Origin: Rhodosorus marinus CCMP1338
Lineage: Eukaryota; Plantae; Rhodophyta
DNA: 64,000 nt
Reading direction: 5' to 3'
NCBI GenBank assembly: GCA_029953675.1
Contig: JAMWBK010000010.1
Location: 806,001-870,000 of the forward strand
Part shown: positions 1 through 62,800 of the stretch, piece after piece
Numbering within the stretch: the stretch's first letter is position 1
How the letters are laid out: each line of letters starts with the position of its first letter
Program-made: the position numbers and the translations under genes
The notes under the pieces: model-generated
What the model was told of the DNA's origin: nothing
Database searches by the model: none
The model's input: only the letters and a program-made list of their open reading frames with translations

Positions 1-410
1 TCGTTTTAAGAGCCGAGAGGGTTTTCCATGGAGTAAATGCTGGTGTTTGGTTTTGTTATTTTGATACGGAATGGGTCTTCTGGGAACGGCGTTTCTGAAA
101 TTACCTTATGTTCTCGGGTTTGAGCTTTAAGGGGGGGCGGTGAGGGGTTTTGACTGTGTTGGAAGGTTTTGCTTGAGAAGAGTGTAACATCATGAAACTA
201 CAGGAGGCGGAAGGCAATAGATACCTTTTTGAATTACGAGTGTTATGGTTTGGGTGAGGATGATTTCTTTGAGAGTGTGGACAAAGAAGACGCGAGAGTT
301 TTTGGACAAGGATTTCGTCCGATTTTTTGATGGGGGTCTGGTTGCCGGAGAAGAAACCAGCGGTTTGGAGTTACTCAGAAGTTGGAGAGTAGCTGTAAAA
401 GTATAGAAAC

Positions 411-3400
411 ATGGGGGAAAATGAAGATCGATTCGACAAATTTGACGGGAAACCGACCTCTGATTTTAACGGATGGCTGCGGAGCCTGGAGATGCGTCTC
501 GAGCGGGAAGGCCTTTGGGACGTTGTCAGCGATTATTTCCAATCGGAAGGTGGAAACAAGAGGTCCTCTGGAAGCCATGCGGTGATGTCTGAAACTAGAA
601 TGGAGTCCTTTAAAGACCCCGCAGTTGTCATGAAGGAAGGAAAGGCTTCCGCGCTGATTATCGAGGCCCTAGAGGAAAGGCCCCTCGCAATCGTTAACGG
701 TTTTCTCCGAGATCCAGTCGAGATGCTTAACCGATTGAGGGAGCAGTACTCCATAGCAGATACGTTAGTTCAGTTGGCAGTTCAGGATGAATTGTTCGCT
801 CTGGAATATTGCGGCGGAGATATCCTCGAGTACATCGAAGAGTTCGATGGTTGCGTCAGCCGTTTGCTAATAGCGGAACCGGACTTTCCGCAGGAATTGA
901 TTCTCAAGCAATTTTTCGAATCGCTGCGGAGCTTGTACGACACTCCGAGGCTGCATTTGCTGCGACGACAACATCTGACTGATCTGCACTGGGATAAAGT
1001 GTCGAGAATTCTCGTCGCAGAGGCAAATATTATTGCGAATCGCAGGCGGAACCGGAAGTCAACTCGCAGTGTCGCAAAAACGGGACCTTCCATCTCTAAA
1101 GTGATCACCGGGCCAGATGCATCGGACGCGGTTGCTGTTGGGGTGCTCGCGAAGAAGAAAAGCCCTGATCCGTCTCATGAAACCTCGGAGAACAACGTAA
1201 ATGAACAAAACGTCCACGAGCGAGTTCCTGTCTCTGCAACTAACTTGCAACTTGTGGAAAAGTCGAAAATGGTCGCCGCAGATGCGGGTTTGTCACAGAA
1301 TGCACTCCCGGGGCGAGAGAACGTTTCCGTAGACGAACGGAAAAGCTTGGAAGTGCCTACTCCGAAGGCACCGATTGCCGCTGAGGAAAGAACTAGTGAT
1401 CAGCAGCCCTTACCAGCGATGCAAGTTGCAGAACGTACGATGACGGCGGCACAGTCATCCCATACCGAACAGGAGCCGATTGAGGCACTGGAGTCCAGCA
1501 AGCAGGGTACAGCGGGCGAACCTGTCGCAAGCCTGAGGCTGTCACCCAAACTACGTGCCTTGCAATCGAGCAAACCTCGCGAAACAGGAAAACCCGCTGG
1601 TGCGGAGCGTTCGAGCTCGAAGTCTGTCGGTGACCAAGCTGGTCACCGACAAGTGGCAAGGGACACGCAATCGACTGACAAGAACATGGAATCCGATACA
1701 GAAAACAAGAGTCGCGTGGATTCACGTGACGTCAAGAGAGAGAGGAACATTGTCGAGCGTGAAGTACAAAAGCAACCAGTTCAGAAACCGAAACTGCCGC
1801 AATCGACGACAGCGACATGTGGAGAGCAGCGAGTAGAACCGGAACAAGGAGCTGAGGCTGATTCCGATAGTACGGAGACGGACACTAGCACGGAGAGGAA
1901 CCTGGTAGCGGAAGTTGAGCGATTGAGCGGTGGTGACAACCAGCACTCGTCCCCCGCCAAGAGCCCTAGAGCTGGTGGCTCGACTTCACAGGGAGCTACA
2001 TCGGTTGGTGGCAATGTTGATGCCAGTACCAAACGGGTTTTGAGAAGCAGCATTAGGGCATCAGTAACTGCGCAGAGGAAGATGACGGCAAATGTCTCCA
2101 AACCAGGTTCGAGCGAGAAGCGTGAAGCTCCGGCGGTACAAAAGGGTGCCCAAGGGTACGCTCAGAGCGACATCGGTAGGACGCGAGTACAATCAGATCC
2201 GCTCCCTCACAATGAAATTCGAATGGCTCCGAAACTGCCCAAGAAAATGCCGATCGAGCCTCTGGTGCGAAGGAATAGGCAGTCGAATAGTTCTCGCAAC
2301 GACCCAGGTTCGGATGAACAATTTGCACGCGGTGCACGCGACGTGCGCAGACGAGGGGTCCGGAGCAATGGCGTGGAAGCTCCCGATAATTCTGTTGTCA
2401 AAGCTGACATTGTCAAGAGCCCTGATGGGCCGTCCGCTGCTGCTCTGCCAAGTTCACCTATTGACCAAGTGACTGCCAAACGCCGGGAACCCTTCCATGC
2501 CCCGGTGCATGGCGAAAGCTCTGCTGATGATAGAGAGTCGCTGGGCAAAGAAAAGGGAACAGGCCGTCAAGGCCCAGATCCTGCCGCGGGGAGACTCAAA
2601 ACCCCGGAAGAGCGGTTCTCTGTGCTTCCGAAGCTGATGAACCGTCAAACCCCAGATTCCGGGAGGTTGAGACTGATTACGGAAAGTCCACCGACTAGTA
2701 GGGTGCTCAGTCAGCCGGGAATGAACCCTAGAGCAGTGGGATCGAGCACGACGGGACATACGAGCGAACGCCGCATTGGGGATGCGACTGTGCTGAGAGC
2801 AAGTCAGGAAATGCAGAGAGGTAAGGACTGGTCAGGATCAGCGGCCGAGAAGACGAACAACTCAGTGGATAAACGCGGAGCAGGTGAGACACCTCTTCGT
2901 GTCTCTCCCGTATCGGATGAATATCAAATGGCAATAGAGAGACAACGGGCGGAACAAAAACGAAGAGACTCGCAAGCATCTGCGCACATTGAGAGGAAGA
3001 CAAGCGTGTCCGCCCAAAGAACACCAGAGATGCGTTCTTTGCGCGATCCTAGGACGGCAGGCACGCCGAATGTGACGTATCGTGGCGCAGATCCCAGGTT
3101 GCGGCGAAATTATAATGATGGGGAAGACGCTGTACAAGGGGTAGAGAGGACGACCCCATCTCAGGAATCTGCTTTGCCAAAAAATTCTGGTGCTGGCACG
3201 AGCGGGACCGAAGCTCTGCTTGTGCAGACTGAGGAGGAAGCTGGACGATCCGCAGATGGACTTCGCGACGGTTCCCGGGCTAATCTCGGCAAGGAGAACT
3301 CCGCAAGTACTAGCCTGCCACCGGGCACCGACTCCAACGTCCGGGTTCAAGAGGAAGCGAAGGCGAGCTTACCTTCAGAAGCTGCTCAACGATCGTTGAC

Positions 3401-4844
3401 AAAACCCAGCGACCGTGTTGCACCTGACGTAGAAAAAAGTGCTAAAACTTCCCCTGATCGGGACACGAATGAAGCGCAAGCCTTGGACCTCGCGCGTTCA
3501 AGTAAACAACTGGAACTCGGTACGGCTGATCCGCAAAGCCCACGTGGATCACGAATCAGGGATAACCAGGAGCTGGCTTCAGCTAAGCCCTCGGAGGAGT
3601 GTGTTGCAGGAGGTTCGAGGTCGAACCACGCACGAACTGCTTCCGCTCGTCGAGAAGCGAGTGGTGCGGTACATACGGACATGGGAATAAGTATTGTTGT
3701 TCGAGAGGCGGAAAGAAAGGTCAAGGATGAGCCAGGGCTGCACAGCGAGCAGCGGGCAGCACCTGAAGGGGAGCCTAGCCCCTCTTATGCAAATGCGCTA
3801 GATGCTCACTATACCGGACAGCAAGCGAACAAACCAACCGGTGTTGCGAGACCGAAGCTCACCATGGTCAAGGACGAACCCGTGCTACGAAGAGATCAAT
3901 ATCCTGACGCAGGAACGCAAGTCAGGACTGCTTCCGACAATGAGGAGCTGCTTCACGACTCTCAAAGCGTCGGGCCGACTGGTCGCCAGGGAAGCGCGTT
4001 TCCTAGGGCGTCGATTACCCCGTTCAGAATTAAGATAAGTGGAAAATTGGTGGGCGACAGCGACCCCTTTTCTAAATGGAGCGGAGCTGTGGACACAGCT
4101 AAAGAGGTACCGAAGGATACCACTCCTGATGTGGGCGTTGGTAGTAGTCCAATTGCTGAGGCCAAAATAGGTTTGACAGCAGAACCAGCAGCGTCTGGAG
4201 CAGAACCACAGTCGACGGTGAATGGAGCCGAAAGCCCAAAGGAAACGGTAGGCAGAAACCTTTTCGGAGTGGAGGCTGACAGCATGGCAATTGTAGGCGA
4301 AGCAGAAGAGGTGATCACGTCCGAGAAGAAAGCAGATCTTCTGAACGGGGATCAGGTGACATCCTCTGACGCGCCTGGGTCTGGCGGTGGAAAGAAAGTG
4401 GTCTGGGCGAAGGAGCTGACGAGAGAGTACGCACTGACTGAGGTCCTGCCATCTGCGGACATTGAAGCGAACGTCATGGATGACCAGCACAGTAAGGAGG
4501 TCGGGGCTGTGTCGATGCAGACGCCAGAGGACTGCAAAGCTCCACCTGAAGAATCGAACGAGGATTACGATTACGAAGACTACGAGTATCCTTTGGAGGA
4601 AACAAGAATGCGGAACAAGCACGCGAGAAAGAAGAAAAGGGACCTGGACAGACGAGACCAGGTTGATGTCGGGTTATGCCCAACTTGTAAACGATTTCAT
4701 CCGGGAACTTGCCGCTACAATCCATCGCTCAACTCCAAGAGACGGAAGAGGATGGAAAAGAAGTCCAAGTTCCTAGAGAAAATCAATCAGCGATTCCATG
4801 CTGAGGAAATCACCAAAGCTAACTCCGGTTCGTCCCAGCCTTGA
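411..4844 (+). CDS. Ty1/copia Gag-derived protein (capsid-like N-domain, long low-complexity region, C-terminal CCHC knuckle); no pol
   Basis: Intronless 1477-aa ORF. The N-terminal ~210 aa (FDGKPTSDFNGWLRSLEMRLEREGLWDVV...MLNRLREQY...LFALEYCGGDILEYIEEF...FFESLRSLYD) follow the copia Gag pattern (DUF4219/Retrotran_gag_2). CPTCKRFHPGTC lies at 4677-4712. No protease, integrase or RT motifs downstream. Confidence 0.75.
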   Translation: MGENEDRFDKFDGKPTSDFNGWLRSLEMRLEREGLWDVVSDYFQSEGGNKRSSGSHAVMSETRMESFKDPAVVMKEGKASALIIEALEERPLAIVNGFLRDPVEMLNRLREQYSIADTLVQLAVQDELFALEYCGGDILEYIEEFDGCVSRLLIAEPDFPQELILKQFFESLRSLYDTPRLHLLRRQHLTDLHWDKVSRILVAEANIIANRRRNRKSTRSVAKTGPSISKVITGPDASDAVAVGVLAKKKSPDPSHETSENNVNEQNVHERVPVSATNLQLVEKSKMVAADAGLSQNALPGRENVSVDERKSLEVPTPKAPIAAEERTSDQQPLPAMQVAERTMTAAQSSHTEQEPIEALESSKQGTAGEPVASLRLSPKLRALQSSKPRETGKPAGAERSSSKSVGDQAGHRQVARDTQSTDKNMESDTENKSRVDSRDVKRERNIVEREVQKQPVQKPKLPQSTTATCGEQRVEPEQGAEADSDSTETDTSTERNLVAEVERLSGGDNQHSSPAKSPRAGGSTSQGATSVGGNVDASTKRVLRSSIRASVTAQRKMTANVSKPGSSEKREAPAVQKGAQGYAQSDIGRTRVQSDPLPHNEIRMAPKLPKKMPIEPLVRRNRQSNSSRNDPGSDEQFARGARDVRRRGVRSNGVEAPDNSVVKADIVKSPDGPSAAALPSSPIDQVTAKRREPFHAPVHGESSADDRESLGKEKGTGRQGPDPAAGRLKTPEERFSVLPKLMNRQTPDSGRLRLITESPPTSRVLSQPGMNPRAVGSSTTGHTSERRIGDATVLRASQEMQRGKDWSGSAAEKTNNSVDKRGAGETPLRVSPVSDEYQMAIERQRAEQKRRDSQASAHIERKTSVSAQRTPEMRSLRDPRTAGTPNVTYRGADPRLRRNYNDGEDAVQGVERTTPSQESALPKNSGAGTSGTEALLVQTEEEAGRSADGLRDGSRANLGKENSASTSLPPGTDSNVRVQEEAKASLPSEAAQRSLTKPSDRVAPDVEKSAKTSPDRDTNEAQALDLARSSKQLELGTADPQSPRGSRIRDNQELASAKPSEECVAGGSRSNHARTASARREASGAVHTDMGISIVVREAERKVKDEPGLHSEQRAAPEGEPSPSYANALDAHYTGQQANKPTGVARPKLTMVKDEPVLRRDQYPDAGTQVRTASDNEELLHDSQSVGPTGRQGSAFPRASITPFRIKISGKLVGDSDPFSKWSGAVDTAKEVPKDTTPDVGVGSSPIAEAKIGLTAEPAASGAEPQSTVNGAESPKETVGRNLFGVEADSMAIVGEAEEVITSEKKADLLNGDQVTSSDAPGSGGGKKVVWAKELTREYALTEVLPSADIEANVMDDQHSKEVGAVSMQTPEDCKAPPEESNEDYDYEDYEYPLEETRMRNKHARKKKRDLDRRDQVDVGLCPTCKRFHPGTCRYNPSLNSKRRKRMEKKSKFLEKINQRFHAEEITKANSGSSQP

Positions 4845-5345
4845 CTGCGATCATTCCGCTGTCTTTTTACACGAACGGCTAGGGTTACTGGGGCGACATC
4901 CATTGTACTATAGTAACTAAAATTTTTGTTTATTATAATAACCGTTCTTGAGACTTCATAACTGGCCAGTGCTACCCCTTCACTGTACGATGAGTTCAAT
5001 GCACAGATGATTCCTTCCCAGGTGCAAAACCCAATAGCGCTAACCCCAGCGTCATCGCGTTTTCATCGGGAGGTGATCTTTGTAGTGTAAAACGCAAACC
5101 AGTACGATCTAATACACCAAGGAACACACCCAGTCGATACCATCTGTCCAAGTCAGTCCAAGTCAGAACCGGCTTTGATGGATCAAGCCCACAATCGGCA
5201 TCCAACGCGAAACGTCAAGCCAGGGTCTCAGCCAGGGTCTCAGTTGGTAAGGTGACTGAAGCGACTTCGTAGTCTTAGCACGATCTAAAAGATAGTTGAT
5301 GCCATCTACTGCTATTTTCAAGGTTGAAGCAACCTAGACGCAACT

Positions 5346-5605
5346 AATTAAACGCAGCTGATCCCATCTACTGCTACAGTTCTGGCAGAAGCAAGGCAGC
5401 AATCGACACCCATAACACTAGCAGTCTGGATCCCCATGGTCAGTGTCATCGCGCTCTATCAAATGAAAACGATGAAAACGGAAAGAGGATCCGGAAAGGA
5501 AGGTGACTTTGTAGTCTACACTACGACCTGGAACCATAAAATTAAACGCAACTGATCCCATCTAGTGCTATTGTCCTGGCGGAAGCAAGGCAGCAATCGA
5601 CACCC
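5346..5605. repeat. Imperfect 66-bp direct repeat (5346-5411, 5540-5605) plus a partial third copy near 5298-5330
   Basis: Manual alignment gives 60/66 identity between the two copies. Confidence 0.9.
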
Positions 5606-8114: not shown

Positions 8115-9421
8115 TCACAGAAATCCAAACTCTTCCTCGTCCTCTGTGTTTCGCTCCTCTCTGCGCCGAAGCCAGTTCTGGACCTTACATTCCGCTATCT
8201 GCTCATCAAGCACCGCCGCATCGGTGTACCGCTCTTCTTTGATCGCCTTTGCGTGCTCAGCCTTAAGGTAGGCAAGGGGGTTCACCGATCGAAGCTCATG
8301 CATGAGCTTCTCCGCCTCCTGTTCGCGATTGAGTCTCAAAGCAAGATCCAGTTGGCTCTTCAGAATCGACGTTTCCTTGTCTTCCGGCAACCTCGCCTTC
8401 TCTGCGACTAAATCGAATAAATAAATCATACGGGTTAAACCTCGTTGTGAGATTGAAGAACAGACATGCAGGGCAGTTGCCATAGATGCAGGTTCTAACA
8501 ACTCACGTATCATAGCGCTGGTCTTCGCCTTCTCATTGTACTTTGCAATCGTTGATGTTCCGTTCTCTATTTCCTTAGCGATGGCCTTTATAGAAACACC
8601 CCATTTAGCCAAGAGCCGCTTGTTCAGGTACAAAGGAGCTTGGTTCTTCAGGGCGAGAACGATCGCATCTGACGGCCTTGCGTCCATTCCAACCTGGTGG
8701 TAGGAGATTTCTTCAGGGTTAGCAATCTGTTTTGGCTTCACACATGTAAGAAAATACTTACTGTTCTGTAGCCAGTTCGAATCCAAATTCTCGCAAAGTA
8801 TATCTCATTCTGAACGTGCGTGATAGCACATTTCGAAACAATCCCATTGTTGGCACGGATCACGTTGGTGAAAAGGTCCTGTGTGGAAGGTCTAGACGTC
8901 TTGTCTTTGGCACCCTGGAGAAGAAATCAATTTTTGAACACGACAAGAATAAGAACCTTTCGTTGTAAGGAAACATAATTCTCTTAAACGCAAAGGTCCA
9001 TGGTTCCTTCACAGCAGAGTTCTAACCGAAAGTGCATATTTGATGGAGTCCACTTGAGACCCAGAGAGGGTCATCTTTAGCGCCTTGCTGTGCAATTTGA
9101 TTGGTGCCAGAGAGATGAGGCACGTCGGGCAGACCTCTTCCTTGTAGCTGACCTTTCTGCTCATCGTCAACACCCGAACTTCAGTGTAGTCAGTGTCCTA
9201 ATCGGCAAAAAAACAGAATCCAACCGCGGTGTTCGTGCGTTCGTCAGCTATGATCCTGATCAAGAGCAAAAAAGTCCAGTTGATATTTTGCTCACCTCTT
9301 CAGGCATCCATCCGCCCTTAAAATTCGGCGCTACAGTCGGATCCTGGCAAACCACCACCCTACTTCGACGCCAGCCTACAGTAGGCGTAAGTCCGGGGAC
9401 AAACCCAGTGATGAAATCCAT
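8115..9421 (-). CDS. Bifunctional nuclease (DUF151/BFN) domain protein with C-terminal UVR motif, likely plastid-targeted
   Basis: RPSTQDLF and DARPSDAIVLAL are DUF151 motifs. KAIKEERYTDAAVL is a UvrB/C-type motif. The N-terminus MDFITGFVPGL... resembles a transit peptide. Multi-exon. Confidence 0.85.
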
Positions 9422-34800: not shown

Positions 34801-37800
34801 AGGCCACCGCAGTAAATGCGAAGCCAATATACGTACCGGAGCCGGACGAACAGGACGAAGCGCGGGACAAGTTGGCTGAGGCCCTGAAGCAGAAATCAGA
34901 GCAGCCCGCTGCAAATGTAGTAGGACATAGAAGCGCAGCAACAAATTGTTCAGTTATCCCACGCCAATGGAATCTGACTAGTGCGAACTTTACCAACTCC
35001 GAATAGGTCGGTTTGGAGCCTACGAAGAAGAGGCGGTTCGTGAGCAGCGCAGGGGATTCACCAAGTACATTCAAACCCCCAGTTGGTGTGGCGCCACCAG
35101 TGACGAGAGCTAAGGCAGCGTTGCTTGCCAAGGCGGGAACGACGGCACCAGACGCATCGATAGGCACCTCAGGGGCTCGTGCAAAAACTGTTGGGTTCGA
35201 TCCCGTCGTCGTATCAGCCAAGCCTGATTTCAAGTTCGCCGTTCCGTCCGAGCCAAAGAAGACGAATTTCGGAACCGGGTTCGGATTCTCCGCGGTAGAC
35301 GCAAAAAAAGCAGTTCCGGCCACGACGGAATCAGGCGAGAAGGACGAAGAGGTGGACATATTCAACCAACCGAAGAACGAAGAGGAGGAGAAGCAAACGG
35401 CGGAGGCGGATAAAACTGAGGGCGAACAGGACGAACAAAGCGAAAAGGTTTGCACACACCTTGAAAATCGTGTAGTCAGGAGTTCGAAGGATTCTTACTA
35501 ACCGGATATGATATTCCTACCCCAGTCGGACGAAGGTACACCTCCTCCGATAGTCCTTGGTGGAGTCGCGCCGCTACCGGAACCAAACTTCACCACCACT
35601 CCTCTTGCAACATTCAGCGGTTTTGAAACGAGCCAGCCTACTGGTGGATCTTCTGCTCTTCTGCCCACGGGCACTGAGTTTATCTTTGGAGGAGCCCAGG
35701 AATCTGCGAAAGAGGAAGCTGATCAGAAAAAAGAGGGACAGAATGGTGTTGAGGCTGACGAGGACCAAACCCAGAAAACCGCAGTTGCGAAGGACCTTGA
35801 AGATGTGAAGAAGGAAGCTCCTGTGCAGATCCCGTCCAGTGGCTTCGTATTTACACCCCCCAAAGCAGAGCCGGAGAAACCCTCGAAGCCACTTAGTACC
35901 GGAACCACCTGGAGCCAGCCTTCAACGTTTGCTCTCAGTTCTAGCTCGGGGGAAGCAAAGAGTTTCTCGTTCACCGCTGCTTCGTCTTCAGGCGATGCAA
36001 AGGATGCTTTGCTTCAAGGAACATTGAACTCTGGAACCATGAAGCCGTTGAGTGAAGCGGAGACGAAGACTTCTTCTGGGGCCATGCCACCAAGTTTTTC
36101 GATACCAGTTGCCAGTGCAGCCCCACCAGACGGTAAAGACAATGCTATTGGCGAACTACATCGAAAGACAGATGCGGCTGAAAAATCTTCGGGAAGTGAT
36201 GCGTTCGGAGCTTCTGGCACTGCGGGAAGTGCAGGTGTTGCTTTCGGGTTAGGAAAGGGGTTGAAGAGTCCTGAGTCTACCCTGACAACGGCTCCCTCGT
36301 TGATATCAAGCGCCTTTATGACGTCCGGAACTGACTCAGAAGCTGCTTCTACACCGAACGCTGGATTCTCTGCGTCATTGGGGCGTAGTGCTTTGGAGTC
36401 AGCGGCACCTTTGTTCTCAACAGCTACACAAGCGAGCGCACCAGTAACAACATTGCCGTCTAGTTCTGCGGCGAATGCGTCAGCTGCAGCTCTAGCTGCA
36501 TCGTCTGCATCGCAATCAACTGAGGCTGATGCCAAAGCTGCGTTTTCCACACCCGATTCGTTTCCGAAGCCTTCGTTTACCGCTAGTACCATGACGACGG
36601 CAGCGACGTCTGGGTTCGGAGTCGCGACAGGGTCATCTTTTCGGAGCCCATTCTCTTCTACTGCAGAAGTAGCGGGAGCGTCAACCGGGTTCACTTTTGG
36701 ATCGGTAGGTACGTTTGGGTCGAAGCCTGAAGCTGCGAAGGAGAACGAGACAGCTGATGCGGTCGGTGCAGGGGTTTCAGCTCCAGCCATTGGGTCAGGA
36801 GTCGCCTTTGGTGGCTTAGCAGCCGCCAGCGGGGCGTCAGCGGCTAGTGCCCTTGCATCGATTTCGACAGGGTCAACGAGCGCAACTCCGGCCTTCTCGT
36901 CAGTTCTTGGTAATGCACTAAGCAGTGGCACAGGCTCGATAGCAGCGGCGACATCTGAGAAACCTGCTTTTGGATCTGGAGTTGGCACTGCGTTCATGTC
37001 CTTCACCACTGCATCCACAACCGTGGACGGGGGCTCGAACAATTTGGGCATGGGCACACCGGCAGGAGGGAATCAATCGGCAGCAGCGAAAGACGCAACT
37101 CCGTCGATGGCATTCCCCGCGTTCGGAGCTGCATCTTCTGCGGCACCATCGTTTTCAACGAATTTTGGTTCTACCATTGGCTCGGCGCCTGCGTTTGGGA
37201 CGAGCAACTTCTCATTTCAGCCTGCGTCAGAATCCTTCGGCCAGGGTCAATCATCATCCGCTTTTCAGGCTCCGACGTTTGGTAGTGCGCCGTCGACAGC
37301 GGCCAGCAGCGCACCGGGAGGTTTTGGTAGCAGTAGCGTCTTCAATGCGAACATGCCTCCACCAACGAGTGTTTTTACAGCCAGCGCCTCGACAGGCATG
37401 TCCGGGTTTTCTAGTAGTAGTGGTGCTATGAGCGGAAATGCCTCAAGCACTGCCCCTGCGTTTGGTGCATCTACTGTTGCGTTTGGAGCGGGCGCTGGGA
37501 CTGCTCCTGCCTTCACGGCGAATGCACCTGCGGGCGGCTTCTCGTTTAGCGGATCAACCTCGAGCCAACCTGCTTTTTCCGGATTTGGTCAAGGACATCA
37601 AGCACCCCAGAGCGGTAGTGCTCCAATGGGATTCGAAAGTGGACAGAATAATTCGTTCTCATTTGGAGGGTCAAGCGGAGGAGGTATACCATGTTGCTCT
37701 TCTACAGAAACAAGATACTCTACTACCCTAGCGATGAGCTAACGGTTTTCTTCCTTGTGTGTTTTGCGTTTCTATTTTCATATCGAATTAGATGGATCAG

Positions 37801-48149: not shown

Positions 48150-49100
48150 CTATGACAGCTTTTTGAGACTACACTGATCCACCCACACCTTTCGGTTCGA
48201 GTTCGTCTTAATGATAAATTCGTATTGTCCCTTCTCAAGAGTCCTGAACACATTTCCCTCCCACGTCCAGTTGCGGACGATCCCTGGCATTCCCTTGTTC
48301 CTCACAATCAGAGTATGGCCGCGAAAGACGAACATTTGCAATGGCCCCTCTCCCCTTGTGAAGCACGAAAACCGAAACGCCGTATTCCCTTCCAGGACAA
48401 CATTCTGAAGCATTCGTGCACTTTTTCCGTTGAGCTCGACAGCATAGGGAGGATTGTAAGTCGGACTGCTAACGTACTTTGCTCCATTGATGTTGAACCA
48501 AGCAGCTGACTTGTAGTCAAACTTGTTGTTCCTAAAGTACTCACCATTGCTTGGCTTCGACAGCACTAGATACTCTTTCAAAAAACAATCATCGACGAGT
48601 CCACTACCCGTCGATTGTACCTTAAACCTGTGCTTCGCCTTGAACTTTGTCTTAAACCTGATTTGCACTTTTTTGTATGAACCGCGTCCCGTGAATTGCC
48701 GTCTGGCAACTTCGCTCTTTCCTTTCTCTACCACAAGGTTCAGCTTTCCCGATCCCTTGTAGTAGCATCCGTACAACCAAATCCTGTAACGATCCAGTGC
48801 CTTCTTCTGCGTAACCACGTTGGGAAGTTTCAAGGCATATTTCCCGCTCCGAGCTTGACTCGAATCAAACTCACTCGTCGTCGTCATCGACCACTGCTGT
48901 GTTCTTTTCTCAAATCCACCGTTGGATAAATAATTCCCGCTTGAGTCCGGAAGATCCAGAGGCAGGTCGTTCACTGGGTCAATAAACCTCCTAGAGACCT
49001 CGTTTCGTTGCATATCGTCACTAGCCAGGACGAGATATCCTCCCGCTAAGAACACGATGCTGACAAAGCGGATAAAGTATATTTCCGAAGACCTCACCAT
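48150..49100 (-). CDS. Secreted basic protein with two tandem CBM4/9-like (galactose-binding-like) modules, intronless
   Basis: Signal peptide MVRSSEIYFIRFVSIVFLAGGYLVLA. Each module starts N-G/N-x-F (NGGFE, NNKFD) and ends VDxC-x-LK. Confidence 0.75.
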   Translation of the reverse strand: MVRSSEIYFIRFVSIVFLAGGYLVLASDDMQRNEVSRRFIDPVNDLPLDLPDSSGNYLSNGGFEKRTQQWSMTTTSEFDSSQARSGKYALKLPNVVTQKKALDRYRIWLYGCYYKGSGKLNLVVEKGKSEVARRQFTGRGSYKKVQIRFKTKFKAKHRFKVQSTGSGLVDDCFLKEYLVLSKPSNGEYFRNNKFDYKSAAWFNINGAKYVSSPTYNPPYAVELNGKSARMLQNVVLEGNTAFRFSCFTRGEGPLQMFVFRGHTLIVRNKGMPGIVRNWTWEGNVFRTLEKGQYEFIIKTNSNRKVWVDQCSLKKLS

Positions 49101-49726
49101 GGTGCTTGGATACAGCTTCAACTCTAGAAACCACCACGAGCAATACCCATGCAGCCTCAATCGGCACCCCCTGCCTCCCACTGGTGCGAGCGCCGCATTC
49201 CTTTAATACCTTTTCGGAAACATACCTACTGTTACAACTCAGCTGTGAGACGAACCTATCTAAAAAAAACTGCCTTCAGCGCCCACTACGTAATACAAGG
49301 AGTACACAACAGCCAAGGAGTCGACAGTGAAACATCCTCTAATACTCCGAACTCGTCGATTCCTAATCCTGGCTGTCATCTAGAACAAATCTGCACTTCT
49401 TCCAGATTTTGTCAGTTTTGAGGTGAAAACTGGAGAACCAGCATAAAAGCCAAACAACTCTCTGCATGAAATAGATCCGGTTAGCTCCATTTTGACGAGA
49501 CAACTCCTATCCAAAGCAAGCACGCCGACTCCCAGTCAGCAAACTGGTCTGCTTAACGCGCAACCCCTCCAGCAGCTTTTCCCAAATATTTATTTACTCA
49601 ATACAACCTCCGCCCGCGTAGCAAACAACTCGAAAGGGGGGGAAGGGGTACAAACAAAATTGTCCCTAACATACACGGAAGGGGTTCTCAGCTTTTACGA
49701 ACGGGGAATTGTTAAGCAATCCGAGG

Positions 49727-51870: not shown

Positions 51871-54411
51871 TTAAACTTTCTTTAGAGAGCACTGGTCGAC
51901 GATTATTTTGTCGTCCTTCTTGGCTTTGACGTACATTCTGTAGAAGCCAAACCTTGGGACCGTGAACCTAACCGTAGTCCTGGTCCATTCTAGTACAGGA
52001 CAACTTTCACCCTTCCCTTCGGCCACATTCTTCCCACCGACCCTGGAAACGATGAGCATCAAAGGACCACTTCCTTTGGAGTAGCACCCAAAGACGTACC
52101 GATCTCCTTGCTCAAGTAGCAACAGCTGATACGCCCGCGCGCCTCCCCTCGGGAGCACCATACTGTACCTGCCATTCAACGGTTCTGCTTCCGAAGCAAA
52201 TGACCCCTTGTCTCTAACCCATTCATGGTTCTGCCGCTCAAAGTCCCTGTTCAGTAGGAACTCTCCACCAATCCTCTTCGGCCTTGCGGGCTCCTCAGTC
52301 TTCTTAACACTGCAAAAGTCCACAAAACCTATACTGTCCGACATGACTGTAACTGTGAACTTGTACTTGCCCAGCACTCCGAGTTCCCCGACTGTTGAGT
52401 ACGGTTCGAACTTATCAGTTACTTCCAGGTACTGTTTTCGCATCAACACCTCTGACCCACGAGTAGCTTTGAGTGACACTGGCCCATTGCCCTTGTAGCG
52501 ACATTCGAAGACGTACCATCCACTTTCGAGAACAACGTATTGAGCTACTGAGGAGTTTCCATTCGGCAGTTTTACCGAGCGCTCTCCGGAATACTTCTCA
52601 TCCTCCGAATACTCGCCTTCGCCTTGCAAAATCCAACTCAGTGAAGACGGTTCGAAATCTGGAGAGCTGAGGTAGTTCCCATAGTTGTTTGGCGATGATA
52701 AGGTCAGGTCGGGGGCTTCTGTAGGCGTCGGAGGGTTCGAGGGCGACGGTTCTAAGGAAACAGTGGGAGTCGCTGAAGCACTGGGCTCCTCGGACACAGA
52801 GGGTTCGGGTGACTCCGTTGCCTCAAGTGCCTCCTTGGCCGCTGTAGTGCCCATAGATATGAAATGTGCACTAAAGTCCTTTCGGTACTCGTCATCTGCA
52901 CTCACGAAAGCAATGATCTTGATCTCGTCTCCTTCCTGGAACTCGTCAGGCATGGGCAATTCTCCGGCAACAGTAACAAAGTCATCAGGGCCAAGTTGAG
53001 ACTCTTCGACAAAAGAGTCGATGAAGTCCAGATCTTTCCTGAAATCAGGAAGTAACTCAAGCCGAACTCTCGCGGGTACGTAGTAGAAGCTGACCACGAA
53101 CCTATCCGCTGCTTTTTGCCCTCTGTTTACCACAGATAGCTTGAACATCAGACTACCGCCACTGTGGAAAGTGGGACTCACGGAAGCCGCTTCTGATTTG
53201 GAAACGTCCTTAGGGTCAAAGTACCAAATGACATACGGGCGCAAGCTTTCCCTGGTCTCCGTCTCGATAATCTTCTCGATAGCACTTCTTCGGCTTTTCG
53301 TCACCGCCACAATGCCGCTTAAGGGGAAGCAGCAAGGGAAAACAAAAGGGCAGATGTTGTAAGAAATCACACCCCAAGTCTTGTACGTGCAGTCATCGTC
53401 GCAATTGGTCTTGAAAACGTTGGCCCCGCTATAGCCTTGGCAGTTGATAGAATCTGCCTCCCTAATAAGCTTGGAATCGTCAAAAATAACATTCCCCGTT
53501 GACTTGACCAGAGTACGGGAATCAAAATCTACTGCTGGATATCCCGAGAATGTAACCTCTTCCCCCAGCGAGGGAATAGACGTTGTGTCTCCCATAGCGC
53601 CAGCAAACGTCATCGGACGATCCAACTGGATCAAGCCAAAGTCGTACTGCAGGTCACCAAACGTTTGCACATATCCAAAGGTAAACATGTTCACTGAATG
53701 AGCAACACCGTATGGCTTCTCGCTCATCAGCACACCATCTGGATCTATGAAATCGTTCATTCCCGGAATGATAACATAACTCTTGAAGAACTTTTCCGTG
53801 TTGACGTCGTATACGCAATGAGCAGCTGTGAGTACGAAGTAGGGGTCAATCAGAGCGCCCGAGCACTCAAATTCCGTTTCTTCCAATTGCTGGGCGCCTT
53901 TGGATGCGCTGAAGTACACCTTCACAACGGATGAATCCGGAAAAGCTGGTACGCCAGGCGCTATTTCATTAAGTTCATATCTTTCGCTTGAATACAGGAA
54001 AGGGTGAGAAACTCTACTGCTCTGATTCAGCATCCTTCTTTGGCCACGAGTAGCACTATTGCGCTCAACGGTGGAGAAAGCCTTTCTAGATCCAGTTTCG
54101 GCAATATCAGGATTCTTGTCAGGTCCCTTCATACCGGGTTTGGGGTCTTCAAGTACGTCAGGCAGCCACCCAGCTTGGATTTTACTTCTGACCGCAGCAA
54201 TCGCATCCTCGGAAGGGCCCAGCGGTGACGCCTCTAGCGCTCGTTTCTGAAGCGATTTCGTTCCAATCTGCGACATCACGTGCCGGAACAGTGGATCCCT
54301 CCGCTGCCATTCGAATAGTTTTCTTCCTGTGCTCTTAGCACTTACAGTCACTGCCTGCACAGCATACAACGTCGCTAGCAGCAACACTAAGATGTACCAC
54401 ATTCGCATCAT
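51871..54411 (-). CDS. Secreted trypsin-like (S1, V8/glutamyl-endopeptidase-like) serine protease with CARDB-like domain, PST linker and two CBM-like modules, intronless
   Basis: Signal peptide; CSGALI..FVLTAAHCVYD (His), DFGLIQL (Asp), CQGYSGA (Ser); LSVVNRGQKAADRFVVSFY is CARDB-like; Pro/Ser/Thr linker; the C-terminal modules are homologous to 48150-49100. Confidence 0.85.
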   Translation of the reverse strand: MMRMWYILVLLLATLYAVQAVTVSAKSTGRKLFEWQRRDPLFRHVMSQIGTKSLQKRALEASPLGPSEDAIAAVRSKIQAGWLPDVLEDPKPGMKGPDKNPDIAETGSRKAFSTVERNSATRGQRRMLNQSSRVSHPFLYSSERYELNEIAPGVPAFPDSSVVKVYFSASKGAQQLEETEFECSGALIDPYFVLTAAHCVYDVNTEKFFKSYVIIPGMNDFIDPDGVLMSEKPYGVAHSVNMFTFGYVQTFGDLQYDFGLIQLDRPMTFAGAMGDTTSIPSLGEEVTFSGYPAVDFDSRTLVKSTGNVIFDDSKLIREADSINCQGYSGANVFKTNCDDDCTYKTWGVISYNICPFVFPCCFPLSGIVAVTKSRRSAIEKIIETETRESLRPYVIWYFDPKDVSKSEAASVSPTFHSGGSLMFKLSVVNRGQKAADRFVVSFYYVPARVRLELLPDFRKDLDFIDSFVEESQLGPDDFVTVAGELPMPDEFQEGDEIKIIAFVSADDEYRKDFSAHFISMGTTAAKEALEATESPEPSVSEEPSASATPTVSLEPSPSNPPTPTEAPDLTLSSPNNYGNYLSSPDFEPSSLSWILQGEGEYSEDEKYSGERSVKLPNGNSSVAQYVVLESGWYVFECRYKGNGPVSLKATRGSEVLMRKQYLEVTDKFEPYSTVGELGVLGKYKFTVTVMSDSIGFVDFCSVKKTEEPARPKRIGGEFLLNRDFERQNHEWVRDKGSFASEAEPLNGRYSMVLPRGGARAYQLLLLEQGDRYVFGCYSKGSGPLMLIVSRVGGKNVAEGKGESCPVLEWTRTTVRFTVPRFGFYRMYVKAKKDDKIIVDQCSLKKV

Positions 54412-57849: not shown

Positions 57850-59400
57850 ACAGACTGCGCTGCTAAACAAAGCTGAGGGAAAGGTAAGGATCCCGCTCAA
57901 CATCCTATAGTCCCTAAGGGGAGCATTCTCCGTGTAGAGGAATCTGGTGCATCGCCTTGACCACCGTGTGGACGTGGCATACCATAGCTTCCGATTGATT
58001 CCGAAAGGCTCACCTTTGCGCTCAAGATGTTGCGGAACTCTTGCTGGAAAATCTGTGGCTTCCTTTCCAGGCCTTCCAAATGCACTCCCAACAAAGTGGG
58101 CAAAAGATGAAATCATAGAGTGCTCGCCCAGAGCATCTCGATATTGGGCCCTCTTCGTTTCAGTTTGTAAACTCGCGAAAGCCGAAGATCTGGCCGCGGA
58201 TGCAGTTAATTTCGGCCCAATGGAGACGGGACACCCTACGCCAATGACATAATGTTTGACGGTGCGACAATGTTGCATCAGGATGGTGGCTTCCGTTAAA
58301 AAACTGGTCAGGTTCCACCTGAACATTACATAGATGCAAACTTGCGGAGGCAAGCTGCTAGCTCGTCATTGTGGCGAATTGTCCAGTTGCCTCAAAAGAA
58401 GGTGTAACCCCAGACAATCGAAAAGTTGTTGATGAGCTTTCTGAGTGTGTGCGGAATGGCACACGGTGCAGTCAGGAGGTAGGAGTCATTATCAATTCCT
58501 GTAGAGGGAATCCTAAGAGTAAACGAAGCCTGCACCGAAAGTTCTGGAGTTCTGAGAGCATCACGGCGCTCAATAGGTAAATCTCGTATCCAAGAGCCCA
58601 CACCCAATCCTTTAGATGCGTATGCGCCCTAAACTCGTCCTGCACATCAGAATTGTGCTCAGGTGCTTCAAAAGTCCGCGGGTGAAGGCTGGTTATCCTG
58701 ACGGGCGGCCTCCTTAAATTTGATTTGATTTCGCAGGGTGTTGAGACATCATTGAAGTGGATAACGACGTAGGGGAACCAGGCTCTGGGCACACTGTGGG
58801 CCATTCACCTTGCTCAATGTCATCCCGGAAGAGGTTTCTACATGCATGATTTCCTCCCAGCGGCCTCAAACCGGTTTTTCGTTGAAATCGTCAAAGCGGG
58901 TGACCACGCGGAAAACTCCAGCTACGATTACAAAGAAGTGGGGAGGGAAAAGCAGAATGGTTTGTTTCCATGCGTTCAGATCACGTCGAAGGCCAACGTG
59001 TTAAATTGGATCCTTGGTCCACTCCTTTCTTCACACCGCGTCATCCCATGTGGTGAAGCATTCGAAAGAGGGCAACGAGCGCTTCGTGAAAACCTATTGA
59101 TTTTGGTCAGAAGAAAGGCAGAGACCGATTTTATTTCTCTTCAATACCAGTGTTCCGTCAAGGCCTTTTCAGTTCGACTGGTTGGTGGTCAACCGGCTTT
59201 GATCCAGCACAAAAAAAACATTTCATCAATATGCCGGGCCGGTTGGAAGTTGAAAATACAGAAAAAACTTCAGCCTGTAGAGATCATTAGACCATGCGAT
59301 AGATTGTTCTTCAATCCGGCTAGCGAAACTCTCAAATCGCATCACGTCCTCATCATCCTCAGCACAACAACTCCCAAAACCACTTCCATCCAATCGTTCC
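57850..59400 (-). mobile_element. Decayed, 5'-truncated non-LTR retrotransposon with restriction-like endonuclease (CRE/R2-type)
   Basis: Across frameshifts, in the expected order: GVGSWIRDLP, FRCRLRLLLGFP, CTVC...DCLGLHLL, IRHND (58365-58379), VEP...HPD (58277-58285), YVIGV, FGRPGKEA. No RT core is visible. Confidence 0.75.
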
Positions 59401-59800: not shown

Positions 59801-62800
59801 ATGAGCAACGAAAGCGACGGCAAGGGGGCGCTTCACTTGGCTTTGTCTTCGGTATGCACGATCGTGCAAAGCAAGGATAGATTTGTATTAGGTCAACAAG
59901 TACTTCAGTGTCTGAAGAACACAGATCCGCAGGTGGGGGATTTACTGTCGAGGAAATCGCTCGGCGTTGTTATCATTTTGTACGGGAAGAGGTATGTACT
60001 TGAGGCTCTGTCTTCGGGAGGACGGCTATACATTCGCCACGGTGGTTCCGCTTCAATTGACGAGATTCTGTGGAAGCTCGCGGAAGTTGGTGCTTGAACA
60101 GGACAAATCCCATGCTATCGACTGAAGGACTTGTGCCGGTCCATTTCCGGGGAAAACCGTATACCAAACCCAGTCTATGTTATTGAATTCTATGGGAAAA
60201 GCTATGGACTAGGACTGTCGAGAAGCGCAAAGACAATCGTGGTTTCCAGGAGTTCCAAGGCCGGAAAAGCTGAGCAATATTTGAAAGCCAAGTGTGCCAG
60301 GAAGCTTGCCAAGTTCATCGCGAACAAGGGTGGCGTCATCGCCGGATCGACTATGGGCGAGTTCGACGCAGAATCACGCAGTTCGCAGCCTATCATCCGT
60401 GGGCTTGCGAAATTCGTGGATGACTTTGGACCTCGGGTTGGGCTCACGTATAGGAGGGACGAGTGCAGTTTCCATGTTCTTGTGGAGGATCACAAGTTCA
60501 ATTCAGATGCTTTCGTAGACAGGCTCCAGAAGAAGGAGTTAGGGGACACGGAGCTCACCTTCTATAGAAAAGTCCAAGAACGGACTCCGGGTGTCCAAGT
60601 TGCCAGCCGATGACAAATGGCACGGAATGTCCGGAGTCCTGCAAATGCCGATCACCACTAGCAATCACAATGAAACAACGATTTTCTTTTTGGAATCTGC
60701 TGAGATCTATGGCATCGATAAGGAATGTTTCAGCCTCAATGGACTGCGGACCCCAACGGAGATCTTATCAGGAAAAGGCAGGACCGCATCCATTGTGTGC
60801 TCGAATGCGCTGAAAAGGTATAGTGTTCTGCAAGCTGTGCTGGTCCTGCGTTTTCGAGGAGACGACGATGGGGAGCGGTTTGTTATCGGTCGCTTACTCC
60901 GGACTCGCTGCTCTCAAAACCCAGAGCTGGCCTTGCAGTACGCTCCTGTAGCACCAGCTCAACACAAGCCCAGGATGCCAAGAATCGGTCGCCACCCTGT
61001 AGTCCTGGTCAACGAAAAGTTACCCCACAGTGGAGGGATGCGCAAGTTTCCAATACCCCTAGCTGCACACAACTTGCCGAAAGAGTGGAAGAAGATGCTG
61101 ATAGAGAACCGAAAGGAGACCTGCAGACTTTTGGAAGGAACGCATAAGAATGGAGACTATACTCTTCATATGACGCGACTGCTTTTCACTGAAGAACACG
61201 CAATGCATGAGGACATGAAGCGTTATGACATGTTCAACGTTGTGCTGAAGAAGAACAGTCTGGAAGTCCCAGGTCTTGCTGAGAAGAGGCCTTCGGTGCT
61301 TAGAGGAGACATTGTACTGATATCTACAAACGAGAGGACTTTTGAAGGTTTGGTTACTCAAGTTCAATTGACGACCATATCCTTGCGATTTCCTCGATCC
61401 TTCAACTACGTCCCCGGAACGCCAGTTCATGTTCGTTTCAAATTGCGGCGAACGAGAATCAGGCAGATGCACCAGGGAATCCATCTGCTTAGCCGGGAGC
61501 ACGTGACGGGGCTGGTGCAATCGATTTTTCCTAGCGAAATAGGACCACCCAATGGTTCTAAGAAGCAAGCGAATGCCGTGGTGACGTGTCGTCACCTCAA
61601 CCAAGAGCAGAGGGCTTGCGTGGAGAACATAGTGTACCCGGAAGTGACGGGGTTCCCGTACGTGATATTTGGTCCACCTGGAACGGGGAAGACTGCTACT
61701 TTGACTTCAGCAGTTAAGGAGCTGTTGACTGTGTTCCCACAGAAGAAGGTGCTCCTGTGTACTCCGACGAATGAAACAGCGGATTTAATGGTTGAACGAC
61801 TTGCAGAAATCATGCCGGAGCTCTCGATACGGGAGATGTACAGACTGATGGCGTTCTCGAGGTCGGACGCTTCTACCTCGGACGCGGCGATGGATTTCAC
61901 GATGTACGATGACGCCAGCCGTTCGTTCCCGACTCCGGAGGTCGATTTTCTGCGCTCGAAAAGACTAGTCGTGTCCACGCTTTGCACGAGCGCCAAGCTC
62001 TTCAACATGGGAATGCGGCGCGGTCACTTCTCGTTGATTGCGGTTGACGAGGTCGGTCAAGCGATGGAACCTGAAGTGCTCAGCGTTTTGGGCGGACTGA
62101 TGGCTCCCAGCACGCAGCTAGTACTTGCCGGGGATCCGAAGCAACTGGGACCGGTTGTACATTCTGACCTTGCGGTGAGGTACGGCCTGGGAGTTTCCTA
62201 TCTAGACCGGATTGGGCTTGCGAAGGCGTACGCCAGGGACACGGCCAAGCACCCAAGTACTTGCGGATTTGACCCCAGGGTTATCACCGAGCTGGTACGA
62301 ACTTATCGACTGCCCGAGAAACTGCTTGAAGTTCCGAATACGTTGTTCTACGAAGGAGAGATGATAGCCTGCTCAAGGGTTAGACCCTTGCCATGGTCCT
62401 CACTTCCTCGACAGGACATCCCTTTGATGTTCACCAATGTTGCTGGGGAGGAGATGCGAGAAGGCAGCTCTCCCTCCTGGTTCAACGTTGAGGAATTGAT
62501 CCAAGTCTTGGTGTACGTCAAGGATCTTGTTCAACATCATGGGGTTCTGGAACAGGACATTGTGGTGGTTACCCCCTATGCCAAACAGAGCCAGAAGATT
62601 CGGACTGCACTAAAAAAAGAGGGGCTGGTCCCGCGTGAAGGTGGGCTCAACCGAACAATTCCAGGGGCAAGAACGTCGCGTCATCTTGATTTCGACTGTG
62701 CGCAGTTCACAAACGTTTCTGAACTTTGACAAACAACACCATATTGGTTTTCTGGGCAACGCGAGAAGGTTCTACGTTGCAATAACGAGGCCGAAAGAGC

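Follow-up and report, generated by a model that had tools for sequence, protein, structure and literature searches.

The window analysed here is a stretch of 64,000 nucleotides from contig JAMWBK010000010.1 (1.69 Mb; assembly GCA_029953675.1) of Rhodosorus marinus CCMP1338, a unicellular red alga whose nuclear genome of 31 Mb, of which 15% are repeats, contains 8,392 genes and 24,821 introns (PMC10250338). Close to its left end lies an annotated gene whose database entry is an uncharacterised protein without recorded domains. Its product begins, by sequence and predicted fold, with the capsid (CA) domain of a Ty1/copia Gag, continues through a long region of predicted disorder and ends in a basic module with a single zinc knuckle (Table 1). 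We consider it rather likely that this is a host gene co-opted from the gag of a Ty1/copia long terminal repeat (LTR) retrotransposon. An initial annotation, made from the letters alone, had described a single intact open reading frame (ORF) of 4.4 kb at this position, and this description holds: the remaining five frames over the same interval contain 26-93 stops each, with 262 codons as the longest open run, so that the frame is not a chance ORF.

Table 1. Features of the gag-derived gene, in window coordinates
Feature	Position (nt)	Strand	Remarks
5' untranslated region (UTR)/leader, G/T-rich, C-poor	92..410	+	aligned to transcript L001; no LTR, primer-binding site (PBS) or R repeat
Intact ORF, intronless, stop included	411..4844	+	1477 aa, ATG to TGA; annotated gene of R. 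marinus CCMP1338
Ty1/copia Gag capsid (CA) domain	411..1085	+	aa 1-225; PF14223, AlphaFold2 (AF2) model, Foldseek
Low-complexity, predicted disordered region, ~1,100 residues	1086..4373	+	aa 226-1321; composition, AF2 predicted local distance difference test (pLDDT)
Conserved island in disordered region (PKKMPIEPLVRRNRQSNSSRNDPGSDEQFA)	2238..2327	+	aa 610-639; at least 87% ortholog identity over a 30-aa window
Predicted isolated charged helix	2916..3008	+	aa 836-866; model residues 559-589
Conserved island (GSGGGKKVVWAKELTREYALTE...)	4374..4475	+	aa 1322-1355; start of better-conserved C-terminal module
Acidic Tyr-rich patch SNEDYDYEDYEYPLEE (aa 1382-1397), then basic cluster 1 RMRNKHARKKKRD (aa 1399-1411), resembling a nuclear localization signal (NLS)	4554..4643	+	translation
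Non-canonical CCHC knuckle CPTCKRFHPGTC, CX2CX3HX3C	4677..4712	+	aa 1423-1434; C-PT-C-KRF-H-PGT-C
Knuckle tail RYNPSLN, NLS-like basic cluster 2 SKRRKRMEKKSK, C-terminal helix	4713..4826	+	translation, AF2
3' UTR	4845..4965	+	transcript L001 3' end alignment

Domain architecture of the encoded protein

The copia Gag pattern that the initial annotation had seen at the start of the ORF was recovered by the profile search it had proposed for the N-terminus. Pfam family PF14223 (Retrotran_gag_2, "gag-polypeptide of LTR copia-type") matched aa 27-205 (nt 489-1025) with 34.7 bits and an E-value of 1.5e-8, above its curated gathering cut-off of 27 bits, and the alignment spans profile positions 2-164, that is, 163 of 172. 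Since relatives reach 43-89 bits on the same profile, the Rhodosorus Gag is a divergent member of the family. The family-invariant residues P102, M105, L109 and Y113 are present, a faint DUF4219 signal falls on the N-terminal FDGKP..DF..W, a motif common to copia Gags, and a basic linker at aa 206-225 closes the domain. Besides PF14223 and the faint DUF4219 signal, a Pfam scan of the whole protein (E<=10) returned no family.

AF2 modelled aa 1-230 from a 29-sequence alignment as ten helices, with a pLDDT of 84.3. Searched against the Protein Data Bank (PDB) with Foldseek, this model matched the Drosophila Copia capsid best (8vvw_A, E 1.4e-4, probability 1.00; then 8s41), with PNMA2, Arc, dArc1, HIV-1 CA and the C-terminal domain of PEG10 CA at lower ranks. 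TM-scores against the Copia capsid are only 0.39-0.46, with a large root-mean-square deviation, as is to be expected where the two lobes superpose but differ in their mutual orientation. When the Gag domain was compared with PDB chains by sequence, nothing came up under E 0.16, and the tie to solved capsids comes from the fold search only; matches in the viral fold library BFVD were weak, led by a retroviral Gag at E 0.1. Judged by sequence and predicted fold together, aa 1-225 is a complete, two-lobed, all-helical copia CA domain, and it is 81% identical to its ortholog in a second strain, which is described below.

The region between the CA domain and the C-terminal module has a high content of S, A, R, E, G and P but few aromatic residues (F 0.6%, W 0.3%, Y 0.7%), and no Pfam family matched within it. 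AF2, working from a two-sequence alignment, placed it at a pLDDT of ~30, with 1112 of 1200 residues below 50, and the isolated charged helix is its sole element with a pLDDT above 70. The large disordered domain of the initial annotation is thus found again as roughly 1,100 residues of predicted, compositional disorder. Two derivations of this region were considered and rejected: it is not degenerate pol, as neither Pfam nor tblastn gave a signal and the order would be wrong, with the knuckle after the region and not before it; nor is it the product of repeat expansion, as it has no tandem DNA repeats and no internal protein repeats.

The C-terminal module (aa ~1322-1477) comprises an acidic tyrosine-rich patch, also given as EDYDYEDYEYPLEE, two basic clusters, the knuckle and a terminal helix. 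The acidic patch and basic cluster 1, which contains RNKHARKKKRD at aa 1401-1411 as read from the translation, are nearly invariant between the two strains, and AF2 predicts a helix at aa 1396-1418. The C, C, H and C of the knuckle are all kept in the ortholog (CATCKRAHPGTC). Its spacing is two residues shorter than the canonical CX2CX4HX4C, and its middle gap has one residue more than that in the CX2CX2HX3C of the initial annotation, which miscounted here; the basic, NLS-like clusters that it had placed around the knuckle were correctly read, at aa 1401-1411 and, as SKRRKRMEKKSK, at aa 1442-1453. The second cluster is accompanied by the C-terminal helix (aa 1440-1472, pLDDT 55-78), and the stretch from nt 4713 to 4826 is again nearly invariant between strains. 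No knuckle was found directly after the CA domain, where copia elements canonically have theirs; the one at aa 1423-1434 is the only one in the protein. Over the whole length, the conserved islands of the two-strain comparison are aa 6-41, 80-119, 152-224, 610-639, 1322-1355, 1382-1411 and 1425-1459.

Scoring 1.84 billion representative sequences yielded 61 proteins at E<=1e-3, of which the 60 non-orthologous ones are copia Gags; the long ones among them are complete copia polyproteins with protease (PR), integrase (IN) and RVT_2. Ortholog aside, the five nearest relatives are at most 33% identical. The ten nearest Gags come from metagenome or sequencing-run assemblies, none from GCA_029953675.1, and the closest Gags of transposable elements (TEs) come from SRR25018260, SRR23287144 and ERZ25073868. 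A metagenome scan with the non-Gag part of the protein (alignment A2) found nothing; as it also missed the known second-strain transcript L001, the collection being without the MMETSP assembly, this negative is uninformative.

Those relatives that extend far enough carry a canonical knuckle directly after CA, at aa ~205-298, and in near relatives that reach that far the knuckle is followed by a tail of the form C-x-x-N-P-[DE]-N-P-x-N-[KR]. The Rhodosorus counterpart after its knuckle reads C-RY-NP-SLNSKR, and both this CxxNP tail and the basic run preceding the knuckle are common to the nearest copia nucleocapsids (NCs). A shortened form, CX2CX3HX4C, occurs in one near cluster, P0005. In a maximum-likelihood (ML) tree, the Rhodosorus pair joins the tail-bearing lineages, apart from a compact clade that has no tail. 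By motif and context, the distal knuckle likely descends from the nucleocapsid of the element.

Host setting and comparison of two strains

The pol gene, the LTRs and the priming signals of the element are gone at this locus. The protein contains no protease, integrase, RVT_2 or RNase H domain (Pfam, E<=10), and copia polyproteins of five to six domains (Gag-PR-IN-RT, RT being reverse transcriptase) aligned by tblastn to the 64-kb window matched only at nt ~411-1082. A search for direct repeats between 2 kb upstream and 1.5 kb downstream found none and hence no LTR pair, while the same tool with the same settings recovered the LTR pair of a genuine copia relative, L003. Neither a tRNA-iMet primer-binding site at the locus nor an R repeat shared by the ends of transcript L001 was detected, and there is no second copy of the gene within the window. 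The initial annotation had already reported the lack of an LTR pair and of protease, integrase, RT and RNase H, and it was right in both respects. When 5.8 billion protein clusters, the annotation of GCA_029953675.1 among them, were searched through a word index, the whole protein retrieved itself and one relative, and the Gag domain alone retrieved nothing. The control sequence L003 (ENA metagenome contig ERZ25073868 ctg64855) is in itself a complete, apparently young copia element with Gag-PR-IN and RVT_2 ORFs, whose LTRs (2110-3017 and 8400-9310) are ~900 bp long, 97-100% identical and 6.29 kb apart.

The flanking genes encode a Sec7-domain guanine nucleotide exchange factor and a mitochondrial-type EF-Tu, both with introns. 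Over the 300 nt before the ATG, the G+T fraction is 0.63 and that of C 0.11; the leaders of four of five annotated neighbours have a G+T fraction of 0.61-0.74, against a background of 0.50 +/- 0.06, in agreement with the host-like G/T-rich leader noted initially. The GC content at third codon positions (0.52) and the correlation of relative synonymous codon usage (0.66) both lie inside the range seen for the window's host ORFs. The view that this is a host gene is likewise supported, by an annotated, intronless gene that sits among ordinary host genes and is transcribed in a second strain.

The one close relative, P0002/P0003 (1437-1440 aa), was found in the transcriptome MMETSP0011, which belongs to this second R. 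marinus strain; over the full length, the two proteins are identical at 69% of positions by BLASTP and at 72% over aligned codons. Expression is documented by the full-length transcript in the MMETSP0011 assemblies: L001 comprises 4,784 nt with both UTRs and is collinear with window positions 92-4965, without intron-sized gaps, indicating that the gene is intronless, compared with a genome mean of about three introns per gene. Each strain has one transcript or gene. The 5' UTRs (L001 nt 8-318 versus window 92-402) are 75.6% identical and the 3' UTRs (L001 4642-4784 versus window 4864-4965) 73.8%, amounting to a divergence of ~25%, while the synonymous divergence dS between the strains is 0.20-0.25. 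UTR divergence similar to dS is the pattern expected of orthologs; it also served as the neutral yardstick in place of a dN/dS baseline from host genes.

Between the two ORFs, 678 of 4,287 aligned nucleotides differ. When 678 random substitutions were placed on the ORF at the observed transition/transversion ratio in 2,000 trials, ~21 in-frame stops were expected, compared with none observed, and not a single trial stayed open (0/2000); for the middle region alone, ~17 stops were expected, and again 0/2000 simulations remained open. In addition, all 15 internal length differences are multiples of three. The absence of stops and the in-frame indels together indicate that the frame has been kept translatable by selection, a conclusion that is well supported for all 1477 codons.

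At the amino-acid level, the signal of purifying selection is weak, and its size varies with the method used (Table 2). Constraint is stronger in the CA domain and the C-terminal 150 aa than in the middle, and none of the windows examined in this comparison of two sequences has an omega (dN/dS) clearly above 1. For accepted co-opted gag genes, published dN/dS values range from 0.04 to 1.0, and the values obtained here fall within this range (PMC8321522). The selection that the initial annotation had deduced is therefore borne out for the open frame, with ~21 stops expected, and much less so for the amino-acid sequence: a dN/dS comparison, which it had suggested for related species, gave between the two strains 0.62 for the whole ORF by NG86, and 0.85 and 0.77 by the other two methods.

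Table 2. Omega between the two strains by region (95% confidence interval, CI, in brackets)
Region	NG86	YN00	ML
Whole ORF	0.62 (95% CI 0.53-0.74)	0.85	0.77
CA domain, aa 1-225	0.45 (0.28-0.75)	0.80	0.62
Middle, aa 226-1300	0.70 (0.58-0.86)	0.98	0.88
C-terminus, aa 1301-1477	0.40 (0.22-0.74)	0.47	0.61

Other features of the window

Several repeats occur around the gene. The intergenic sequence that separates the gag-derived gene from the Sec7 gene contains three to four copies of a tandem unit of ~115-137 bp (L002 8786-9247; families D1-D3), which sit ~0.75-1.2 kb upstream of window position 1 and are unrelated to the sequence downstream of the ORF. In the spacer before EF-Tu, a direct repeat of 39-80 nt (D4/D5; …GATCCCATCTACTGCTA…GGCAGAAGCAAGGCAGCAATCGACACCC) occurs two to three times at window positions 5294-5605, with spacings of 62 and 194 nt, and two micro-tandem repeats are found at 5146-5166 and 5218-5243.

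The initial annotation had contrasted the open frame with a supposed TE at 57850-59400, riddled with stops, and this contrast has to be dropped, since the TE nature of that interval was not confirmed. Its 17 ORF pieces, run against Pfam in two passes, gave only a sub-threshold hint of the integrase-core family rve_3 (E 0.15, 12.3 bits), located on the minus strand at 57897-58103; a tblastn search with copia polyproteins found no match at 57850-59400. At 60591-62729 on the plus strand lies the gene for a MOV10/SDE3-like RNA helicase of the UPF1 family (annotated, 694 aa), with AAA_11/AAA_12-type Pfam domains; its best non-self relatives are 37% identical and named "helicase MOV-10". In animals and plants, helicases of the MOV10/SDE3 class have been connected with RNA silencing and with the control of retroelements.

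Two genes on the minus strand, at 51871-54411 and 48150-49181, encode paralogous, apparently secreted proteins of 846 and 343 aa. A trypsin domain (PF00089, E 8.5e-8) is present in the larger one, whose C-terminal ~280 aa are 29% identical to the smaller paralog (E 4e-31), which gives a weak signal for a CBM_4_9 carbohydrate-binding domain; both end in ...VDQCSLKK. The ORF of 744 aa at 35508-37742 on the plus strand matches no Pfam family; it abounds in S, A, G, T and F, is dotted with FG/GFG motifs and looks by eye like an FG-nucleoporin. The long antisense ORF at 36014-37057 that overlaps it is probably an artefact of composition.

Origin of the gene, its possible function and known systems

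Of the features by which Wang and Han (2021) recognise gag co-option, the gene shows selection and, in the second strain, expression, with orthology at the level of strains only. If it was co-opted from a copia gag, as we favour, its product could be a modular, self-associating scaffold that binds nucleic acids. In such a protein, the CA domain would provide dimer or oligomer contacts and possibly form capsid-like shells, and the C-terminal module, with its acidic tyrosine patch, two NLS-like basic clusters, shortened CCHC knuckle and terminal helix, may confer nuclear import and binding of RNA or DNA. The ~1,100-residue middle would act as a flexible spacer, in which continuity and bulk composition matter and the exact sequence does not. 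The knuckle of the element, once located directly after CA, would have been pushed ~1,200 residues away by expansion of the linker.

A number of observations weigh against this interpretation or limit its reach. In the data searched, the gene is carried by only two strains of one morphospecies, the second sequence, on which orthology rests, is known as a transcript only, and the 1.84 billion representatives contain no ortholog in other taxa, with proteomes of other Stylonematophyceae hardly sampled among them. The genome-wide copy count rests on annotated proteins, and annotation may omit masked TE copies. The weak and method-dependent constraint on the amino-acid sequence belongs here as well, and so does the fact that the MOV10-like helicase, sought as a host baseline for dN/dS, had no CCMP769 ortholog in the protein or metagenome collections. 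In the tree, the stem of the Rhodosorus pair measures ~3 substitutions per site, which makes its point of attachment unreliable. A profile hidden Markov model (HMM) built from the knuckle regions of 35 relatives scores the Rhodosorus C-terminus at -2.1 bits, no better than shuffled sequences, BLASTP of the knuckle against the relative with the shortened form was not significant, and the zinc-knuckle family zf-CCHC (PF00098) has no match in the protein; given these results, homology to the nucleocapsid rests on motif and context. Finally, the low pLDDT of the middle stems from a two-sequence alignment and for this reason agrees with disorder without proving it.

The doubts about the knuckle bear directly on a different origin, to which we give a rather small chance, namely that a host gene for a disordered, basic, knuckle-bearing nuclear protein gained a copia CA when a gag fragment inserted at its 5' end, in which case the C-terminal knuckle would not come from the element. 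The non-canonical spacing, the lack of a zf-CCHC match and the non-significant profile and pairwise tests would be accounted for in this way, and fusions of co-opted gag with host sequence are documented in Crtg10-KELP and Crtg14-PEX14 (PMC8321522). Yet the transcription unit of 4.9 kb is wholly intronless, as a retro-derived unit would be, in a genome with about three introns per gene, the start of the ORF coincides exactly with the Gag N-terminus, the nearest copia NCs share the CxxNP tail and the basic run before the knuckle, and an admittedly weak search found no protein with the middle or C-terminal part minus Gag. The shallow conservation, in turn, would suit a gag-only relic or non-autonomous element, either one like TR-GAG or a copy immobilised not long ago, with the two sequences as members of a family and the frame kept open by selection, recent or still acting, for propagation of the element itself; a high omega and TE copies possibly masked from the annotation-based counts would be in keeping with it. 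We regard this as improbable and the reading as disfavoured: LTRs, PBS and R repeat are lacking at a locus where the LTR control worked, neither the window nor the protein collections contain a second copy, with one gene or transcript per strain, the ~25% UTR divergence matches dS, and leader and codon usage are host-like. As described in PMC4350172, TR-GAGs resemble the Rhodosorus gene in their gag-only coding capacity but have LTRs, a PBS and a polypurine tract, are shorter than 4 kb and are repeated, whereas the Rhodosorus unit of ~4.9 kb has neither LTRs nor PBS nor polypurine tract, and no repeats of it were found. A decaying or chance ORF, such as a young pseudogene that has yet to gain stops, is disfavoured too, and we think it very improbable indeed; the near-neutral middle (omega 0.70-0.98) would be compatible with it, but the frame simulations, the in-frame indels, the full-length transcript and an omega significantly below 1 in the CA domain and the C-terminus speak against it.

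Assuming co-option from a copia gag, the function could still be another than that of a scaffold. The protein may, although we consider this unlikely, restrict retrotransposons, with its CA co-assembling with or capping the capsids of active copia elements and thereby poisoning assembly, and its C-terminal basic knuckle competing for element RNA; such a role would differ in function and not in origin. An intact CA, predicted to fold like the Copia capsid, would suit it, as would a relatively high CA omega (0.45-0.80) and a very long stem, both as in genetic conflict, and a MOV10-like helicase lies in the same window, a co-location only. Against it stand the lack of an identified related active copia element in the genome, the low identity of the nearest TE Gags, which does not exceed 33% and of which the ten nearest all come from other assemblies, the lack of a window with omega clearly above 1 in two sequences, and the fact that known restriction Gags are short and need no disordered region of 1,100 aa. 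Ty1 p22/p18 and mouse Fv1 would be its closest analogues, as CA-derived proteins able to interfere with capsid assembly or uncoating; p22 is made by the Ty1 element itself and Fv1 derives from an ERV-L gag, and both are short, without a long disordered region. A bolder analogy, for which we see little likelihood at present, is that the red alga independently evolved an Arc/PNMA-like system from Ty1/copia, in which CA would form shells, the knuckle would package RNA and the disordered chain would decorate or fill the particle, where it might drive condensation or act as a surface brush. If this were true, it would be a self-assembling host nucleocapsid in a new lineage and superfamily; we know of none in either the red algae or the copia superfamily.

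Arc/dArc1, PNMA2 and PEG10/RTL are host genes that have kept a retroelement CA fold, as the Rhodosorus gene appears to have done, but they are animal genes of Ty3/gypsy origin, and the Rhodosorus protein is known from its sequence and predicted fold. For several of them, capsid assembly and RNA transfer have been demonstrated, and RTL1 and some PNMA members resemble the Rhodosorus protein further in carrying long low-complexity extensions. The Drosophila Copia capsid (8vvw, 8s41) and Ty1 Gag belong to the same Pfam family, and Copia provides the best structural match for aa 1-230; at 19-20% sequence identity, however, they represent active elements with pol and LTRs, in which a canonical knuckle adjoins CA.

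Documented gag co-options are mostly animal and Ty3/gypsy-derived. The initial annotation had taken this as its premise, which is dated by now, as four Ty1/Copia cases are on record, two of them from angiosperms, Crtg9 and Crtg10, and two from fungi, Crtg12 and Crtg13 (Wang & Han 2021, PMC8321522). Like the Rhodosorus gene, these are copia-gag-derived, without LTRs or pol, expressed and of single or low copy number, and some are fused to other coding sequence; their overall dN/dS, from 0.12 to ~1.0, brackets the 0.62-0.85 found here (PMC8321522). They differ in being conserved above the family level with synteny, whereas the Rhodosorus gene is found in two strains of one morphospecies, and this shallow phylogenetic depth, together with the weak amino-acid constraint, limits what is otherwise a solid candidate for gag co-option. 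Since the same survey reported no co-option from red or other algae and stated that protists are under-sampled (PMC8321522), the gene is apparently the first candidate for a co-opted gag in Rhodophyta, to which it would extend the phenomenon, and the finding is of use for annotating the uncharacterised entry. For Crtg9, 10, 12 and 13, ~217-293 codons each were analysed, compared with 1477 aa, a disordered region of ~1,100 aa and a distal knuckle in the Rhodosorus protein, an unusual layout. With a complete CA domain separated from a conserved basic knuckle by ~1,200 residues of disordered, fast-evolving chain, it would offer a natural test of whether host proteins derived from capsids need CA and NC to be adjacent.

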